Shown: positions 18,524 through 63,748 of the stretch, one piece after another
Position numbering within the stretch: the first letter of the stretch is position 1
Layout: each line of letters opens with the position of its first letter
IMG/VR virus record: IMGVR_UViG_3300023174_005338
Location: 273,120-337,119 of that record
Reading direction: 5' to 3' (one strand)
DNA: 64,000 bases
Notes under the pieces: model-generated
Told to the model about the DNA's origin: nothing
The model's database searches: none
What the model saw: the letters and a program-made list of their open reading frames with translations, nothing else
Position numbers and translations under genes: made by a program

Positions 18524-19720
18524 ATGTCACAAGAATTATTAGAAGGCCGTTGGGACGAAACCAAAGATGCACTCTTGGAAGGTTTATCCGGATCCAAGCG
18601 TAGCTCAATGAGTGTAATCCTTGAAAATACCAAGAAGTACTTGCGTGAGAACGCTTCTTCTGGTTCCACAGTATCTGGCAACATCGCTACATTAAACCGT
18701 GTGATTCTGCCAGTGATCCGTCGTGTTATGCCAACCGTTATCGCTAACGAGTTGGTTGGTGTTCAACCAATGACAGGTCCTGTAGGTCAAATCCACACAT
18801 TACGTGTTCGCTATGCACAGAGCTTGAATGACACATCAGCAGCCGCCACAAGCGTTGCAGCTGGTTCTGAAGCTTTGAGCCCATTCACAATCGCTACAGC
18901 TTACTCTACTGTACCTCAAGCTACCGCAACAGCTACAGGTTACACAGGTAACAACACAGCGACCATGGAAGGCACAGGCGGTAAGCAAATTTCCGTACAG
19001 ATCTTGAAGCAAGCTGTTGAAGCTAAGACACGCAAACTCCAAGCTCGTTGGACATTTGAATCTGCACAAGACGCACAAGCCATGCATGGCATTGACGTTG
19101 AAGCAGAAATCATGGCTGCTCTTGCACAAGAGATCACAGCTGAGATCGACCAAGAAATCCTGTTGAGCTTGAGCACATTGGCTGCTACAGAGTTTACATA
19201 CAACCAAGCTACTGTGTCTGGTACAGCAACATTCGTTGGTGATGAGCATGCCGCTTTGGCAGTGTTGATCAACCGCGTTGCTAACTTGATCGCTCAGCGT
19301 ACACGTCGTGGCGCTGGTAACTTTGCTGTTGTATCTCCAGCAAGTTTGACAGTGTTGCAATCTGCAACAACATCAGCTTTTGCTCGCACAACAGAAGGCA
19401 CATTTGAAGCACCCACAAACACCAAGTTTGTTGGTACACTCAATGGCGCAATGCGTGTGTTCTGCAACAGCTACGCCGCTGACACAGCTAGTGTGTTGGT
19501 AGGTTATAAGGGTACGAGCGAGGCAGATGCTGCCGCGTTCTATTGCCCATATATTCCTTTAATGAGCAGCGGTGTTGTTCTTGATCCATCAACATTCGAA
19601 CCAGTCGTATCATTTATGACGAGATATGGCTTCGTAGAATTGACAAATACTGCAAGTTCCTTCGGTAACGCTGCAGATTATGTGGGAGAAATAGCAGTAC
19701 AAAATTTATCATTCTCATGA
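18524..19720 (+). CDS. gp23: Major capsid protein
   Basis: LVGVQPMTGPVGQI, AKTRKLQARWT, EITAEIDQEI, TRRGAGN, FYCPYIPL and TRYG. Confidence 0.97.
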   Translation: MSQELLEGRWDETKDALLEGLSGSKRSSMSVILENTKKYLRENASSGSTVSGNIATLNRVILPVIRRVMPTVIANELVGVQPMTGPVGQIHTLRVRYAQSLNDTSAAATSVAAGSEALSPFTIATAYSTVPQATATATGYTGNNTATMEGTGGKQISVQILKQAVEAKTRKLQARWTFESAQDAQAMHGIDVEAEIMAALAQEITAEIDQEILLSLSTLAATEFTYNQATVSGTATFVGDEHAALAVLINRVANLIAQRTRRGAGNFAVVSPASLTVLQSATTSAFARTTEGTFEAPTNTKFVGTLNGAMRVFCNSYAADTASVLVGYKGTSEADAAAFYCPYIPLMSSGVVLDPSTFEPVVSFMTRYGFVELTNTASSFGNAADYVGEIAVQNLSFS

Positions 19721-19797: not shown

Positions 19798-19842
19798 TGA
19801 TTACAAGTTTAGGTAAAAGTGAGGTTTATCATAAATAATATT

Positions 19843-20601
19843 ATGAACAAATACAAAACTTGGTATAACAACATTACTGAAAACGCCAAAACTCGTATAT
19901 CGGATGGATATACGGAACGGCATCACATTATCCCTCGAAGCCTAGGCGGATCTGACAGTAAAGAAAACTTAGTTGATCTCACAGCCAGAGAACATTTCAT
20001 ATGTCATTGGTTACTGATTAAAATGCATACTGGCGAATCAAAAGCTAAAATGATTTATGCTCTAAATGGTATGAAACGAAATGGCAGATTTAACGAAAGA
20101 TATGAAACCAAAATAACAAGTAGAGTTTATGAAAAGCTCAAACAAGAATTTTCTCTTATACACTCTGCCAACATGAAAGGTCGCACTGCCCACAATAAAG
20201 GTGTTCCTGCCACAGAAGAACAAAAAGAAAAAAATAGGCTGGCCGCAAAAGGTAGGAAGATGAGTCCAGAATCAATCGCGAAAGGTGTAGCCAAGCGCCG
20301 CGGACAAAAAAGAACAGAAGAGCAAAAGGCAAAAATTGCAAAATCAGTAAAAGAAGCACTTGCTAAAAACCCAAGAGGCCCAATGAGCGATGAACATAAG
20401 TTAAAAAGGTCATTAGCATCATTGGGTAAACCAAAGCCAGCTGGGCATACTGAAAGAAGACTTGCGACTCTTGCCAAGCAGTTGGCAGAAGGCACGCATT
20501 ATAGTCAACAAAAAAAGACCTGTCCACACTGCGGAGTAGTTGCAAGTAAAGGTCCTTACACAAGGTATCACGGACCTCACTGCCAGGCCCTCAAACCTTA
20601 A
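19843..20601 (+). CDS. Free-standing HNH homing endonuclease with NUMOD3-like repeats
   Basis: ERHHIIPRSLGGSDSKENLVDLTAREHFICH; basic repeats; C-terminal CPHC. AT-rich; TAAATA 5 nt before the ATG. Confidence 0.85.
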   Translation: MNKYKTWYNNITENAKTRISDGYTERHHIIPRSLGGSDSKENLVDLTAREHFICHWLLIKMHTGESKAKMIYALNGMKRNGRFNERYETKITSRVYEKLKQEFSLIHSANMKGRTAHNKGVPATEEQKEKNRLAAKGRKMSPESIAKGVAKRRGQKRTEEQKAKIAKSVKEALAKNPRGPMSDEHKLKRSLASLGKPKPAGHTERRLATLAKQLAEGTHYSQQKKTCPHCGVVASKGPYTRYHGPHCQALKP

Positions 20602-57438: not shown

Positions 57439-58152
57439 ATGAAAAAATTACTCTTAGTATTACTATTCACACCACTCGCGGCCCTGGCACAGATCAATGC
57501 TCAATGTCCACAGTTCACAGTCAATGGCACACCCGAATATCAAGCCCAACCTGGCGATCAGGAACTTTGTAAACAAAACTATGCCGTGATCCATCGTTGC
57601 GGTGTCAAGGCTCCGGTGGCAGTGTTTGAACACTTGACCGTTGCGGCCATGACCGGTCCTGCTAAAAGAAAAGATGATTTCCGTCCAGATCCGCAAGTGC
57701 ATGAACAGTGCCGTGCCAGTCTAGCTGACTATGCCACCGTAGGAAAGACGCACGATCGTGGTCATATGAGTCCTGCTGCCAACAACAGTCAAAACGAACA
57801 AATCATGAGCGAAAGCTTCTACTTGAGCAACATGCTGGCACAAGTTGCCAACAACAATCGTGGTGCCTGGAGACTGTTAGAAGCCGCCGAACGCCAATGG
57901 GCCATGCAACCCGGCACAGATTTCTACATCATATCCGGAGGTATCTTTGATCCCGGTCATCCGGTCACAGGCAACGGCCTGGGCATACCCACTAGACTCT
58001 ACAAGATCATCATAGAAAAGAACAGCCGCCAGGTGCAGGCATACCTCATGCCCAACGCACCTATTAGCCCAGCTACCAGCTGGCCACAGTATCAGACCAC
58101 CATGACCGAAATCGAGCGTGCCACAGGCATGCGATTCAACCTGGGACAATGA
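57439..58152 (+). CDS. Exported DNA/RNA non-specific endonuclease (NucA/Serratia family)
   Basis: Sec signal MKKLLLVLLFTPLAALA; DRGH catalytic motif, SFYLSNM..Q...NNRG.W..LE and IPT.LYK. Confidence 0.88.
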   Translation: MKKLLLVLLFTPLAALAQINAQCPQFTVNGTPEYQAQPGDQELCKQNYAVIHRCGVKAPVAVFEHLTVAAMTGPAKRKDDFRPDPQVHEQCRASLADYATVGKTHDRGHMSPAANNSQNEQIMSESFYLSNMLAQVANNNRGAWRLLEAAERQWAMQPGTDFYIISGGIFDPGHPVTGNGLGIPTRLYKIIIEKNSRQVQAYLMPNAPISPATSWPQYQTTMTEIERATGMRFNLGQ

Positions 58153-58346: not shown

Positions 58347-59483
58347 ATGAACTCATTTTATTGTGCGGCTCCCTGGCGAGGCCTGCACATCAATCCACGC
58401 GGTGATGTCAAACCCTGCTGTGCAGGAAATCCCAACATGCTGGGCAATTTAAACAACAAAACCATTGAAGAAATTATAAACGGGCCCAAGCTGAAAGAAA
58501 TCAGATCAGCATTGCGACAAGGCCAGTATCATGAATTTTGCCGAGGGTGCCAAGTACGGGAAGCTCATGGCGGCGACAGTGAACGGACTTGGCATAATAC
58601 CATAAATGATTCATTTGATTCCACACAAGCTGGATTAGAATACGAATATCCTACCCTGTTAGACATACGTTGGAACAGTACCTGTAATCTTAGTTGTAAC
58701 TATTGCGGCCCAGCAGACAGTTCAAAATGGGCTGCTTTGAAAAAAATGCCCATAAACAACAACACTAGAAATTATTATTTAGAAGTTTGTGAATTTATTG
58801 AAAACAACAATCAACATGTTAAAGAAGTTGCACTAGTTGGCGGAGAACCCCTGCTGTTGCCGGAAAACGAACGCCTGCTAGATGCAATACCCGCAGACAC
58901 TGTTATCACTGTTATTACCAATCTTAGTAATAATTTAGAAACAAATAAAGTTTTTCAAAAACTAGCACAACGTCCACGAGTGGGCTGGAGTATGAGTTTT
59001 GAAAATATAGGCCCAAAGTTTGAGTATGTGAGATATGGCGCCAACTGGGAATTACAGTTGCACAATCTTGATCTGGTCCAGTCTCTAATTCGTGATCGAG
59101 GACATTGGGGCGGCATACATGCAGTGTACAATCTTTACAATGCCACGCACTTGGTTGAATTTAAAAACTTTGCTCACGAACGCGGATTATCTATCAAATG
59201 GCAACCATTGGGTACACCGTCGGCATTGGATACAAAAAACTATGGACAAGAAATTGCTGTGATGGCCGCTACAGAAATTCAACGCATGTTTGACACTTGC
59301 AACATAGACGATGAAGAACGTGTGTTGTTTGGCACAGCACTTGCACACTATCAATCGATTGTTGATACCAAGCCAGAAAAATTAGAAGAATTAAAACGTT
59401 TTGTTGATGAAATTGAACAATACCATCCAGATCAACAAGGAAAGTTTCATGAACTATGGCCAGAAATAAGTAGTTTACTATGA
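58347..59483 (+). CDS. Radical SAM protein with N-terminal twitch/SPASM domain
   Basis: C.APW....I...G.V.PCC...C..C N-terminus; CNLSCNYC; GGEPLL. Confidence 0.85.
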   Translation: MNSFYCAAPWRGLHINPRGDVKPCCAGNPNMLGNLNNKTIEEIINGPKLKEIRSALRQGQYHEFCRGCQVREAHGGDSERTWHNTINDSFDSTQAGLEYEYPTLLDIRWNSTCNLSCNYCGPADSSKWAALKKMPINNNTRNYYLEVCEFIENNNQHVKEVALVGGEPLLLPENERLLDAIPADTVITVITNLSNNLETNKVFQKLAQRPRVGWSMSFENIGPKFEYVRYGANWELQLHNLDLVQSLIRDRGHWGGIHAVYNLYNATHLVEFKNFAHERGLSIKWQPLGTPSALDTKNYGQEIAVMAATEIQRMFDTCNIDDEERVLFGTALAHYQSIVDTKPEKLEELKRFVDEIEQYHPDQQGKFHELWPEISSLL

Positions 59484-60415
59484 GTCAAACTGAATCAACT
59501 TTAGTCAAAGCACCGTATCGTCAACAACATTGGACCGATCAGCAGTTGGCTGAGTTTATGGCCTGTGCCGACCCTGTGACCGGGCCAGAATACTTTATGG
59601 ATCACTTCTTTCATATACAACATCCTACCCGAGGCAAAATGTTGTATCATCCATTTGACTATCAAAAGCGATTGATTAACACATACCACAATTACCGCTA
59701 TTCAATATCAATGATGCCGCGACAGACCGGTAAGAGTACCAGTGCCGCAGGATACCTGCTGTGGATGGCCATGTTCCGCCCTGATTCCACAATCCTGATC
59801 GCCGCACACAAATACACAGGCTCACAGGAGATCATGCAACGCATACGCTATGCCTATGAACTATGCCCGGATCATATTCGTGCTGGAGTAACATCATACA
59901 ACAAAGGCAACCTGGACTTTGAAAACGGATCACGCATAGTTTCAACCACCACAACAGAAAACACCGGTCGTGGTATGAGTATTACCTTGCTGTACTGCGA
60001 CGAGTTCGCATTCGTGCGACCCACCATAGCCCGCGAGTTCTGGACATCCATCAGCCCTACCTTGGCCACTGGTGGTAAAGCAATTATTACGTCAACACCC
60101 AACTCAGATGAAGATCAGTTTGCTCTGCTATGGAAAGGTGCCAACAAGACCGAAGATGCCTACGGCAATCCTACTGAGTTAGGAATAAACGGATTCCGGG
60201 CCTATAGATCATACTGGAATGAACATCCTGACAGAGATGAACGTTGGGCCGCTGAACAACGAGCGCAACTGGGCGAAGATCGTTTTCGACGAGAGATGGG
60301 CTGTCTAGCACCAGATTCGGTGCTGACCCTTAAAGATCGTTCTGGAAAAATATTTAAAAAAACTATCGATGAATTAAAAGAACTGCTGAGTTTATCATCA
60401 ATGACAACTAAATAA
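59480..60415 (+). CDS. gp17: Terminase large subunit N-terminal (ATPase) part fused to a 37-aa N-intein
   Basis: PRQTGKST Walker A, LLYCDE Walker B and ITSTPN. After FRREMG comes CLAPDS..., intein block A. Confidence 0.9.
   Translation: MSQTESTLVKAPYRQQHWTDQQLAEFMACADPVTGPEYFMDHFFHIQHPTRGKMLYHPFDYQKRLINTYHNYRYSISMMPRQTGKSTSAAGYLLWMAMFRPDSTILIAAHKYTGSQEIMQRIRYAYELCPDHIRAGVTSYNKGNLDFENGSRIVSTTTTENTGRGMSITLLYCDEFAFVRPTIAREFWTSISPTLATGGKAIITSTPNSDEDQFALLWKGANKTEDAYGNPTELGINGFRAYRSYWNEHPDRDERWAAEQRAQLGEDRFRREMGCLAPDSVLTLKDRSGKIFKKTIDELKELLSLSSMTTK
60302..60412 (+). mobile_element. Split intein N-fragment (37 aa)
   Basis: CLAPDSVLTLKDRSGKIFKKTIDELKELLSLSSMTTK, then stop. Confidence 0.85.
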
Positions 60416-60419
60416 GTTT

Positions 60420-60959
60420 ATGAAAAAACATAAACATCATGTTATTCCTAAACACATGGGCGGATCTGACGACCCATCTAATCTAATAGAACTTACTGTA
60501 GAAGAACATGCAGAAGCACATCGATTATTATACGAAACACACGGACACACTCAAGACAAAGTAGCCTGGCTTGGACTTGCAGGCATCATGCCCTACGCTG
60601 AAATTATATACACTTTGCTATCAGAAGGCAAAAAAGGAAACAAAAATCCAATGTTTGGAAAGCCGGCACCCAACAGAGGTATTAAACGCCCAGGTGTAGG
60701 CGGCCGTAAAAAGGGCACTAAATGGTCAGCTGAAGAACGAGCAACCAAAGAAAAAATAAGATCTACTTCAGAATACAAAGAAAAAATGGCAACTGTATAT
60801 TCAGATCCGGTTCGAAATGCCAATATTAGTAAAAATAACAAGGGTAAAATTGGAGCCGCAACCGGTAAGGCTTGGTATAACAACGGCATTGAAGAAAAAT
60901 ATTTTGTAGTTGATCAACAACCTAAAGGATTCTTTCGTGGCAGACTTACTAGAAAATAA
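60420..60959 (+). CDS. Free-standing HNH homing endonuclease between the split intein halves
   Basis: HKHHVIPKHMGGSDDPSNLIELTVEEHAEAH; NPMFGK and WYNNG NUMOD-like motifs. TAAATA at 60409-60414. Confidence 0.88.
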   Translation: MKKHKHHVIPKHMGGSDDPSNLIELTVEEHAEAHRLLYETHGHTQDKVAWLGLAGIMPYAEIIYTLLSEGKKGNKNPMFGKPAPNRGIKRPGVGGRKKGTKWSAEERATKEKIRSTSEYKEKMATVYSDPVRNANISKNNKGKIGAATGKAWYNNGIEEKYFVVDQQPKGFFRGRLTRK

Positions 60960-62013
60960 TTTAGGACTACAGGTACTAACCGATACTGGTTGGAGTGATT
61001 TTGAAGGATTGCTTGATAAAGGGTCAAAACAGATAGCCTTATTACAATTGACCAATGCCTCTATCAAAGCTACCTTGGATCATAAAATCTATACTGATAA
61101 ATTTGATATGATTCCGGTTAGTCAACTTCGAGTTGGTACACAAATATATACATCATCTGGATTACAAAAAGTAGTAAGTGTTACACTAGACAGTACTAGT
61201 ACTGTCTATGATTTGTTAAATGTAAAAAATAATCGCAGATTTTTTGCTAACGATATTTTAGTCTCAAATTGTGAATTTATCATCAACGATGAAACCTTGA
61301 TAGCTCCAGCCAAGCTGATAGATCTACAGGGACACGAACCCTTGTATAAAACTGGCCAGGTACGCTGGTTTCAACGTCCCAGAAAAGATAGAACCTATGT
61401 GATAGCACTTGATCCCAGCCTGGGCACCGGTGGCGATCCAGCGGCCATACAGGTATACGAAGCAGAAACCACTGAACAAGTGGCCGAATGGCGACACAAC
61501 AGGACCACCATACCTGAACAGGTTCGCATCTTAGCCAGCATTTGTGCTCACATCAATGAAACTGTGCAGGATCCTCAACAGATCTACTACAGCATAGAAA
61601 ACAACACCATTGGCGAAGCAGCCTTGATCAGCATAGCTGAATACGGTGAAGAACGCATACAGGGCTATTTTCTCAGTGAGCCCGGCACGGGTGGCGGGCG
61701 TAGATATCGCAAAGGATTCAACACCACCAACAAGCCCAAACTGGCGGCCTGCAACAAGTTAAAATTGCTGGTAGAAACGGGCCGCATGAAAATCCGCAGC
61801 ACGGGCTTGGTTTCAGAGCTCAAAACCTTTGTGGCCTCAGGCATGGGCTATGCTGCCAAACCCGGCGAAACCGACGATCTTGTCATGAGCACAGTGCTGG
61901 CAGTGCGCATGCTACAACTGCTACAAACCTATGACAATGATATCAACAACCAGCTGAGAGATCACGGTGACGAAATCAAACCACCCTTGCCCTTCATAGC
62001 AGTCATGCGATAA
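60937..62013 (+). CDS. gp17: C-intein (~111 aa) fused to the terminase large subunit nuclease domain
   Basis: GTG 60937 with AAGGA SD; block B ATLDH, block F VYDL and block G FFANDILVSN|CEF. Nuclease motifs ALDPS.G.GGD, IENN and DDLVM. Confidence 0.88.
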   Translation: MADLLENNLGLQVLTDTGWSDFEGLLDKGSKQIALLQLTNASIKATLDHKIYTDKFDMIPVSQLRVGTQIYTSSGLQKVVSVTLDSTSTVYDLLNVKNNRRFFANDILVSNCEFIINDETLIAPAKLIDLQGHEPLYKTGQVRWFQRPRKDRTYVIALDPSLGTGGDPAAIQVYEAETTEQVAEWRHNRTTIPEQVRILASICAHINETVQDPQQIYYSIENNTIGEAALISIAEYGEERIQGYFLSEPGTGGGRRYRKGFNTTNKPKLAACNKLKLLVETGRMKIRSTGLVSELKTFVASGMGYAAKPGETDDLVMSTVLAVRMLQLLQTYDNDINNQLRDHGDEIKPPLPFIAVMR

Positions 62014-62023
62014 ATAACTTACT

Positions 62024-63748
62024 ATGGCAGATATTACACCCGCTCGTAAATTGTTTGACCTTTTGATCAGCAGAGATTTTGACCCAGAAACCCTGGATTC
62101 CGCTGGCCGTCCAGCTGCAGACCCTGCCGAAGCAGAAATATTCAGCTTTGATTTCCGTGCCGAAAGTGGCCGAGATTATGGCACAGTGGTTATCATGCTC
62201 AGCGACACAGGAGATCTAGATGTGTACTGTGCGGACAACGTGGGTAGAACCATGGAAGGCTCAGACAAGGATGATTGGTTTGTTTTTCTTGAGCAACTGA
62301 AGAATTTTGCTGTTCGAACCAATCGACTGAATTTTGGTGTAAAAAATCTCAATCATTTAAGATACAGCATGCAAGGACAGGCTGCCATCAAGGAAGGCCT
62401 ATTTGAATCATGGTCTGGCAAACGAGACGTCAGTTGGAATGCTGGAGCCACAGAAAGCCGACTCATGATCAAACACAAACGGGTCATGGGCGAAGGTGAA
62501 GCCAGATTTCGTTGCATAGAAAGCCTGTTTATTGAAACAGCCGACGGTGAAAGATACAAACTGCCATTCCGCAACCTCACAGCCGGCAAGGCCATGTTGG
62601 AACATGTGCGTGCTGGTGGACGACCCTACGACGATCGTGGACAACACATTGCAGAAATGGTCACGGAATTAAATGTGCTCAGCAGATTCCGCAGAGCCAA
62701 CACAGGTAAATTATTAGAAGGCGACACTGCTGTGTTGGTTGAGAAGACCACGGCCTATTACGAAACACTGCGACACACATTGAAGAGCCTAGCCACACGT
62801 GGTGGTTATGGACGATATTTTGAAACTTGGAATCCAGTGGAGCTCACCGAAGAATCTGCCGTGATCGATGGACTCAAACATTTATTTGTAACACAGAGCA
62901 TTGACCAGCGCATTGAAGATGCACTGCCGTTGATCGCTAGAATTCAACAACAGGAAAACGCCATGAAAGAAACAGAAATATTTGAAGCCTGGGCTGAACA
63001 GCTCACAGAAGGAACCTGGCAAACACCAGACACACCAGAAAAGCAACAGAGATTGATCAAACTGTTGAGCACAGACTTGCCAGTGGGTGCTGATGCTACC
63101 AATGCCACAGAACAATTGTATGATCTCCTGGGCGATGACCAGTTGTTTGATCAACTGCAGGCCTTGGCTGACAGTGATGCCAACGCAGATGCACGCCAGG
63201 TCGTACTGAACCGCATGCAAGAACTGGATCAGGATCCAGATGTAATGAAAGTTATTACCAGCTTGAACATTGACGCTACAGCAGAAATGAATCCGCCTGA
63301 GCAGACTCCAGCAGATTTAGATGTTGACCAAGATATGAAAGAGGCAGTCAAAGATCCAGCGGATCAGACCGAAGATCCTGAAGGTACCAAACAACCAGCC
63401 TATCCTGAATATGATCAAGACTTGAGCAGTATCTTGAAACATGCAGGTGTGCCCGCCCAAGAACGACCAGCACCAGATTATGAACTGGAAGTGGCCGAAA
63501 CAGCCAATCCGGGTGTGACCCCAGCCGACATCGACGGCGTGCCCACAGAAGAATTGGATGAAGCAGATCGTTGCAACATGAGCGAAGCTGGTGAAAGTTG
63601 CCCAGTGCATGGACTCCGAGAGTGCGGCATGTACGAAGCTTCGGCTCTGCAAGGACAGTATGGACACAGTGGTAGAATGAAACCGGTGGCCGAAGACACT
63701 GGATTCTTGACTCGTCTCAAAGAACTTAGCGGTATGATCCGCAACTAA
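62024..63748 (+). CDS. Conserved hypothetical late protein with acidic C-terminus
   Basis: TAAATA 7 nt upstream; IESLFIE..DGER.K.PF..L...AM..HV..GG.PYD..G.HI; terminal CPVHG..EC. Confidence 0.65.
   Translation: MADITPARKLFDLLISRDFDPETLDSAGRPAADPAEAEIFSFDFRAESGRDYGTVVIMLSDTGDLDVYCADNVGRTMEGSDKDDWFVFLEQLKNFAVRTNRLNFGVKNLNHLRYSMQGQAAIKEGLFESWSGKRDVSWNAGATESRLMIKHKRVMGEGEARFRCIESLFIETADGERYKLPFRNLTAGKAMLEHVRAGGRPYDDRGQHIAEMVTELNVLSRFRRANTGKLLEGDTAVLVEKTTAYYETLRHTLKSLATRGGYGRYFETWNPVELTEESAVIDGLKHLFVTQSIDQRIEDALPLIARIQQQENAMKETEIFEAWAEQLTEGTWQTPDTPEKQQRLIKLLSTDLPVGADATNATEQLYDLLGDDQLFDQLQALADSDANADARQVVLNRMQELDQDPDVMKVITSLNIDATAEMNPPEQTPADLDVDQDMKEAVKDPADQTEDPEGTKQPAYPEYDQDLSSILKHAGVPAQERPAPDYELEVAETANPGVTPADIDGVPTEELDEADRCNMSEAGESCPVHGLRECGMYEASALQGQYGHSGRMKPVAEDTGFLTRLKELSGMIRN

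Follow-up and report, generated by a model that had tools for sequence, protein, structure and literature searches.

A freshwater jumbo phage terL gene interrupted by a probable atypically split intein with a free-standing HNH endonuclease gene between its halves

The gene for the large terminase (terL) of a jumbo phage (337 kb) found in freshwater and lake metagenomes is very probably a fractured gene, in which the two halves of a split intein, with an HNH endonuclease gene lodged between them, would deliver a seamless TerL protein by trans-splicing while together forming a homing cassette. The gene occupies positions 59480-62013 of the window, by which we mean the whole stretch of DNA analysed here, namely the final 64 kb of the single 337,119-bp contig of IMG/VR record IMGVR_UViG_3300023174_005338. 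It is made up of three open reading frames (ORFs) on the + strand, each in a different frame. These combine, in order, the ATPase half of TerL with the short N-terminal piece of the intein (IntN), the free-standing endonuclease, and the long C-terminal piece (IntC) with the nuclease half. The features of the locus are as follows:

59480..60301, + strand: TerL N-extein (ATPase half), 274 amino acids (aa), ending ...DRFRREMG; matches Terminase_6N, phrog_36964 and T4 gp17
60302..60412, + strand: IntN, 37 aa, CLAPDSVLTLKDRSGKIFKKTIDELKELLSLSSMTTK, starting with Cys1 (CLAPDS...MTTK); TAA stop codon at 60413-60415
60408..60415, + strand: T4-late-promoter-like motif CTAAATAA, which includes the IntN TAA and lies 4 nucleotides (nt) 5' of the HNH ATG
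60420..60959, + strand: free-standing putative HNH homing-endonuclease gene, 179 aa; matches phrog_655, with weak Pfam matches to HNH and NUMOD3
60924..60939, + strand: Shine-Dalgarno-like AAAGGA (60924-60929) and GTG 60937, within the HNH gene's 3' end
60937..61269, + strand: IntC, 111 aa, with TLDH (T46, H49), VYDLLNV (D92) and ILVSN (Ser110, Asn111)
61270..62013, + strand: TerL C-extein (nuclease half), 247 aa plus stop, starting with Cys+1 (CEFIINDE); matches Terminase_6C and phrog_36964

The first ORF (59480-60415, 311 aa) comprises residues 1-274 of the N-extein followed by the 37-aa IntN. The second, the HNH gene, begins after a gap of 4 nt between the IntN stop codon and its ATG, in a frame different from that of the first, and overlaps the third by 23 nt. 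The third ORF is open from 60910 and ends at 62013; read from the conserved GTG at 60937 it encodes 358 aa, with a 111-aa IntC that ends in ...ILVSN at 61269 and runs on into CEFII.... This GTG is, on comparative grounds, most likely the true start. Of the 13 split relatives compared, 12 have a start codon at the same position behind an (A/G)GGAT motif and an IntC of 111-112 aa, the exception being L060, which has a 114-aa IntC without that motif. Moreover, independent gene calls for the IntC-TerL-C proteins of relatives give 357-360 aa, with 358 aa in the closest clusters. Since the start recurs in relatives and the gene-caller lengths agree, we take the IntC to be 111 aa long. A preliminary description of this DNA had already arrived at three ORFs with the HNH gene in another frame, a 37-aa IntN and an IntC of about 111 aa, and the ORF coordinates and frames bear out that layout; the TLDH of block B, the VYDL, the ILVSN and the penultimate serine that it named are all to be seen in the IntC.

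Several matches identify the host protein as a T4-type large terminase. The N-extein matches Pfam Terminase_6N (3e-17) and carries the Walker A (PRQTGKST), Walker B (LLYCDE) and ITSTPN motifs, and the C-extein matches Terminase_6C. Against the phrog_36964 TerL profile, the N-extein match ends at position 626 and the C-extein match begins at 628, while residues 99-308 of T4 gp17 align with N-extein aa 15-228 and residues 383-549 with C-extein aa 30-210. Extrapolated from these alignments, the junction falls near gp17 residue 355-360, which we take from the gp17 structure to be the boundary of the ATPase and nuclease domains. A tblastn and six-frame profile search of the genome found no second copy of terL or of the intein, and with a single terL whose motifs are intact in both halves, the phage apparently depends on this gene. 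Searching a cultured-phage database with the nuclease half of TerL returned no close relative of that half; the nearest are the proteins of Phosso, Atu_ph07 and PA5oct, phages of Sinorhizobium, Agrobacterium and Pseudomonas respectively, with 45-49% aa identity and matches that are uninterrupted.

The exact point of insertion is given by relatives that have no intein. A scan of IMG/VR yielded 589 related stretches, and the locus counts in this account cover the best 80 of them (L-numbered). In 62 of the 80, terL is uninterrupted and the codons for Gly274 and Cys+1 are adjacent; the commonest of these intein-less alleles have the junction peptide DRFRREMG-CEFIINDE, which is what results from placing the exteins of the window end to end. 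The EMG-CEF product earlier proposed for splicing therefore equals the natural junction in the 62 intein-less alleles. In nucleotide alignment with the intein-less L006 (on a 320-kb contig), the match of the window stops at 60304 and starts again at 61270. An intein is present in 18 of the 80 loci, split in 17 of them and contiguous in one, and an HNH homologue lies between the intein halves in the same layout in 12 related loci. At the same terL site, the contiguous version (L050:3878-4327, on a 179-kb viral contig) is a mini-intein of 150 aa with homology to IntN as well as IntC; it is an intein that either was never broken or has been fused again. Another of the terL loci, L012, has an additional contiguous intein-like insertion in the ATPase domain (L012:1610-2142), following the position that corresponds to aa 173 of the N-extein.

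The residues that are kept in the element support its assignment to the class-1 inteins, with an atypical split into a short IntN and an IntC that contains blocks B, F and G. Cys1, encoded from nt 60302, is invariant in the alignment of all 15 family members (35-97% identity), as are the Thr and His of block B, the Asp of block F, the terminal Asn and Cys+1. The same picture emerges from 120 close clusters (protein clusters at 90% identity), in which the block B Thr is found in 119, the His in 120, D92 in 119, N111 in 119 and Cys+1 in 120. Pairwise ratios of nonsynonymous to synonymous substitution rates (dN/dS) are 0.03-0.27 for IntN, HNH and IntC, and 0.04-0.07 for the exteins. The element is well preserved and probably active. 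The residue before the terminal Asn is a point at which this lineage departs from the wider intein clade: penultimate His is found in 196 of 282 domains of the latter, as against Ser in 111, Lys in eight and His in one of the 120 close clusters. By this distribution the serine, which the preliminary description had rightly noted in place of the usual histidine, is a trait of the lineage and no accident. In terms of length, IntN measures 30-37 aa among the relatives. By eye, the last seven codons of the 37-aa IntN of the window align with non-coding spacer in relatives whose IntN is 30-33 aa long, and its functional core is therefore probably about 30 aa.

A profile built from the family was also compared with inteins of solved structure. 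It matches the CatC consensus of the AceL-TerL type best (6dsl_B, 3.9e-14), in keeping with the kinship to known inteins for which an alignment had been proposed as a check, followed by VidaL (1.2e-12), a DnaX mini-intein (2.7e-10), gp41-1 (8.9e-10) and NrdJ-1 (3.6e-07). The IntC of the window as a single sequence reaches CatC at E 0.09 and VidaL at E 0.004, and IntN alone, a query that is too short for such a search, gave nothing meaningful against the PDB. We further predicted the complex of IntC (plus 5 aa) with IntN (plus 10 aa), taking the median of three runs and adding three controls. The ipSAE score was 0.73, as against 0.01 for the best control; 58 of 80 solved complexes attain that mark, as do 2 of 110 mismatched pairs. 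The predicted interface involves the N-extein at residues -2 and -1 and IntN at residues 1-13 and 22-33; Cys1, blocks B and F and the C-terminal junction are part of it.

The cassette bears the signature of recent movement. Compared with the loci L002 and L003, the IntN-HNH-IntC unit is 92-93% identical at the nt level, with synonymous divergence (dS) of 0.18-0.45, while the flanking exteins are 73-74% identical and their dS is saturated (about 2.5 for L002). The switch in identity relative to L002 occurs within approximately 30 nt of the intein boundaries. At the same time, the nearest extein relative of the window at the protein level, L006 (97% and 94% aa identity for the two exteins), has no intein. 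These contrasts indicate that the cassette moved as a unit between diverged terL genes. Judged by these identities, the transfer was recent and its boundaries coincide with the ends of the intein, as expected for homing by an embedded endonuclease. The element is thus more similar than its flanks and, being present in 18 of the 80 loci, patchily distributed, both of which are marks of mobility.

The candidate agent of this homing is the HNH protein, which matches phrog_655 ('homing endonuclease') at 1.3e-15, Pfam HNH with 20.4 bits (cut-off 21.4) and NUMOD3 weakly (15 bits). Its HNH motif, HHVIPKHMGGSDDPSNLIELTVEEHAEAH, lies at the extreme N-terminus and is followed by a basic NUMOD3-like tail that would bind DNA. 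The residues of the H-H...N...H...H motif are visible and conserved in relatives, and the gene has a dN/dS of 0.06-0.17. The break point inside the intein holds an HNH gene in most of the split loci, and other occupants in a few. First, L009 (3352-4029), and also L010, has an endonuclease with a GIY-YIG-like N-terminal domain (Pfam 16.7 bits, below the cut-off), the C-terminal DNA-binding region of which is that of the HNH protein, with 58% identity. Second, L060 (339-599) has an 87-aa DUF7487 ORF with a PD-(D/E)xK-like D...E-x-K pattern. Third, L014 (4006-4045) has just a 37-nt spacer with no endonuclease. We tentatively suggest, with rather more doubt than conviction, that the terL site holds the whole life cycle of a fractured intein within one lineage, and that the intein of approximately 30+111 aa with Cys1/Cys+1 and penultimate Ser is a naturally efficient trans-splicing pair, sufficiently different from AceL, GOS and Cat to provide a further, possibly orthogonal tool for short-tag ligation. 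The stages of such a cycle may be represented by the empty site (62 loci), the contiguous intein (L050), the intein broken by HNH, the versions with the GIY-YIG-like protein (L009, L010) and DUF7487 (L060), and the one from which the endonuclease has been lost (L014).

The genome of the phage has a second free-standing HNH gene in the window at 19819-20601 (+ strand; phrog_655, 2e-52). It lies directly 3' of the gene for the major head protein (18524-19720; phrog_138, 9e-98) and appears not to split a gene.

On the basis of these observations we envisage the following mechanism. A class-1 mini-intein would have entered terL at the boundary of the ATPase and nuclease domains, within the invariant RFRRE-x-x/CEF motif, and a free-standing HNH gene would subsequently have broken it approximately 30 residues from its N-terminus. 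The three tightly packed ORFs are probably co-transcribed, yielding TerL(ATPase)-IntN, the endonuclease and IntC-TerL(nuclease) as separate polypeptides. The short IntN would then dock into the near-complete IntC and complete the HINT fold; Cys1 would form a thioester, Cys+1 would take over the N-extein, and Asn111 would cyclise without help from the usual penultimate His. The expected product is a seamless ...REMG-CEF... TerL with the same architecture as the proteins encoded by intein-less alleles. The HNH enzyme, for its part, would cut the intein-less (or endonuclease-less) terL of co-infecting relatives, upon which the whole cassette would be copied in.

Some points weigh against this reading. 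The His that usually assists Asn cyclisation is replaced by Ser110, and this holds lineage-wide. The high score of the complex might come from the predictor's memory of the solved Cat or VidaL complexes, so that the 0.73 shows likeness and not binding. The HNH protein of the window is a short version, with the motif starting at residue 5 and a Pfam score just under the cut-off, which makes its enzymatic activity uncertain. Moreover, the freshwater metatranscriptome X20 contains an identical 225-nt contig (60189-60413, from the N-extein through the last IntN codon), which could be carried-over DNA. Finally, the case for splicing itself is built on conservation, purifying selection and predicted docking. 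With regard to the first of these points, inteins without the penultimate His can splice. Ser110 hence does not exclude membership of class 1, and the conservation of the lineage under purifying selection fits splicing without that His.

The best-surviving alternative is that the intein halves no longer splice and that TerL is a non-covalent complex of two chains held together by IntN and IntC. In such a case, which we regard as improbable, TerL would come to resemble the endonuclease-split NrdA of phage Aeh1, which is functional without ligation. The absence of the penultimate His would be consistent with this, as would the position of the split at a domain boundary, where two chains might still cooperate, and endonuclease-split genes that work without splicing are known, as cited within PMC2677866. 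However, the residues that serve splicing alone (Cys1, T46/H49, D92 and Asn111) are kept among sequences of as little as 35% identity, where dN/dS stays far below 1, and the contiguous version in L050 must splice in order to yield a normal TerL. We accordingly retain trans-splicing as the favoured reading.

Removal of the interruption as RNA, i.e. as a group I or group II intron with an HNH ORF and merely coincidental intein-like motifs, is a far weaker contender that we consider scarcely credible. HNH ORFs are common in the group I introns of phages, and a contig from the RNA library X20, spanning 60266-61307, joins 60299 to 61273. However, this joined contig, with 2-4 mismatches per approximately 34 nt, belongs to a diverged relative, and the same joined form occurs as DNA in run X2, while the identical X20 contig over 60189-60413 retains IntN. 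Likewise, no Rfam family, be it an intron or another, matched 59300-62200 at E<=1, so that neither a group I nor a group II intron is indicated. Further, the sequences on either side of the HNH gene code, in the frames of the exteins, for a complete HINT domain (E 4e-14 to solved inteins), and they are under purifying selection at the protein level. Contigs that skip 60299-61269 are 86-88% identical to the window and present as DNA at approximately 5-17% of the depth seen in X2; being diverged and present as DNA, they represent intein-less alleles that co-occur in the lake and are candidate targets of the endonuclease. The RNA-level removal that the preliminary description had named as a refutation thus finds no support, and the continuous frame in reads that it also named was seen in diverged intein-less relatives and not in this genotype. 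The X20 contigs also suggest activity of these phages in the lakes sampled, although DNA carry-over may be responsible.

That the locus is an artefact of assembly, or a pseudogene decaying in a defective phage, is very improbable: the sequence does come from a metagenome assembly, and both holders of near-identical DNA may be source samples, but the broken layout recurs without a single difference in run X1 (a contig of 25 kb) and, in another study, in run X2 (a contig of 1,422 bp at depth 312), at least 182 protein clusters and 16 IMG/VR loci share the architecture, and all the catalytic motifs of TerL are intact with extein dN/dS of 0.04-0.07. As both samples are flagged as possible sources of this DNA, the support from X1 and X2 is not fully independent.

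Expression of the downstream ORFs may involve a further element. An internal promoter had been placed at 60409 in the preliminary description; a consensus scan of the + strand found no sigma-70-like promoter there (8 sites in the region overall against 6.6 expected), and what stands of the proposal is a conserved, T4-late-promoter-like motif, CTAAATAA. ATAAATA is the core of the T4 late-promoter consensus. It recurs 3-6 nt upstream of the start codon of the endonuclease in eight more distant relatives. Genome-wide, 26 of the 47 ATAAATA sites have an ORF start within 25 nt, as against 26% for permuted motifs. At 11 of the 47 an ATG follows 5-8 nt downstream, including the sites of the gene after terL (ATAAATA at 62010-62016, ORF at 62024) and of the second HNH gene, where the motif stands 5 nt upstream of an ATG (19843) that is in frame. 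Its retention in relatives, together with the genome-wide excess at ORF starts, points to a conserved motif associated with gene starts. Were it a promoter, the 5-8-nt spacing to the ATG would imply very short leaders or none at all.

The genes that precede terL have features of their own. The immediately upstream gene (58347-59483, + strand) overlaps the start of terL (ATGA) and encodes a radical SAM protein, in which a SPASM domain at the N-terminus (aa 6-69) precedes the core of the radical SAM domain (aa 112-257), an order opposite to the usual one. Further upstream, the ORF at 57439-58152 (+ strand) starts with an N-terminus like a signal peptide, contains a DRGH motif, HDRGHMSPAANN, and by eye resembles secreted non-specific DNA/RNA endonucleases.

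If TerL is indeed restored by trans-splicing, an essential, single-copy packaging motor would be made whole only after translation, which shows the burden of a selfish element that a phage can survive. The maturation of TerL would depend on both halves meeting late in infection, and alleles of terL with and without the intein would compete in the same lake. In practical terms, atypically split inteins with an IntN of approximately 30 aa are valued for tagging with synthetic peptides, and the lineage offers a pool of candidates. No concept is changed by this locus, inasmuch as the architecture has been in the literature since 2009 and in use since 2014; its value lies in a clean natural series of states of intein fracture and in a source of split inteins with short IntN.

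Both parts of the arrangement have precedents, and the preliminary description was correct in treating the kind as established, as TerL split inteins with short IntN and fractured genes are on record (PMC2677866; PMC11766414). Fractured genes were defined by Dassa et al. 2009 (PMC2677866), and their order, with the host protein's N-terminal part plus IntN, an endonuclease, and IntC plus the host's C-terminal part on the same strand, is the order in the window. Among the loci of that study is a terminase from Lake Gatun with an intein broken at an unusual point, whose 122-residue C-part has all motifs except N1. The loci of 2009 have GIY-YIG or Vsr-like endonucleases as opposed to the HNH protein here. 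They also have, upstream of the endonuclease, a hairpin-bearing non-coding stretch of 27-51 nt, in contrast to the mere 4 nt in the window. In most of the relatives examined here, the distance from the IntN stop to the endonuclease start is roughly 10-30 nt, and the 27-51-nt spacer is a descriptive feature of fractured genes, not a defining one.

The closest characterised inteins are those of the TerL group, as summarised in PMC11766414. GOS-TerL, the Lake Gatun intein just mentioned, characterised by Bachmann & Mootz 2015, has an IntN of 37 aa and an IntC of 115 aa with Ser1/Cys+1, and AceL-TerL (Thiel et al. 2014) has pieces of 25/104 aa; both trans-splice, and Cat (Stevens et al. 2018) is a consensus derived from this type. 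Like the window, GOS-TerL belongs to a freshwater phage TerL and has an N-proximal split that leaves every motif but N1 in the IntC, a 37-aa IntN, a long IntC (115-122 as against 111 aa) and Cys+1; compared by description, it differs in having Ser1 where the family studied here has Cys1 in 15 of 15. The GOS-TerL IntN is reported there to be trimmable from 37 to 27 aa, which fits the conserved IntN core of approximately 30 aa in our family. That source also reports the IntN pieces of GOS-TerL and AceL-TerL to be interchangeable, which makes a new orthogonal ligation tool, as had been envisaged for this variant, a matter of speculation.

Cat (PDB 6DSL) shares with the window a short IntN, an IntC of approximately 104 aa, Cys1/Cys+1, Glu at +2, LTxxG(F/W)xxFxG and YDLLNV. 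CatC, as a PDB chain that stands in for the native AceL and GOS inteins, continues with C-E after the last intein residue, as does the window. Yet Cat ends in ...GIVSH(N)-CE with a penultimate His, unlike the ...ILVSN-CE of the window lineage with Ser in 111 of 120, and the IntN of AceL-TerL and Cat is 25-30 aa long as against 37 aa. Given that the single IntC sequence reaches CatC only at E 0.09, we place the intein of the window in a probably distinct subfamily. VidaL (PDB 6VGV), the second-best solved homologue, is likewise a metagenomic, atypically split intein, and it differs from the window in sequence family and split length. In architectural terms, a close parallel is the DNA polymerase B (PolB) gene of the jumbo phage MIJ3 (PMC6892783), where a free-standing HNH gene likewise lies between the host protein's N-terminal part with IntN and IntC with the C-terminal part. 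However, its host protein differs, its split is canonical, with blocks A, N2, B and N4 on the N-terminal piece, and its block G reads ...HNS.

The wider distribution places these similarities in a broad context. A profile search of 1.84 billion cluster representatives recovered 5,273 proteins with E<=1e-3, of which 1,096 reach E<=1e-10. Terminases with 2-7 intein-like stretches (e.g. P0003 and P0083) are numerous among the matched proteins, and approximately 100 of the 282 domains in the top 150 matches, at several insertion sites, lie at the very N-terminus of the protein, the configuration of an atypical split. The close family comprises at least 182 clusters, of which the named ones are almost all annotated as 'hypothetical protein', and no examined member of the lineage carries a record of characterisation. 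On these comparisons, the element is best described as a new and recently mobile member of an abundant class that has been known since 2009, within which it probably belongs to a distinct subfamily.

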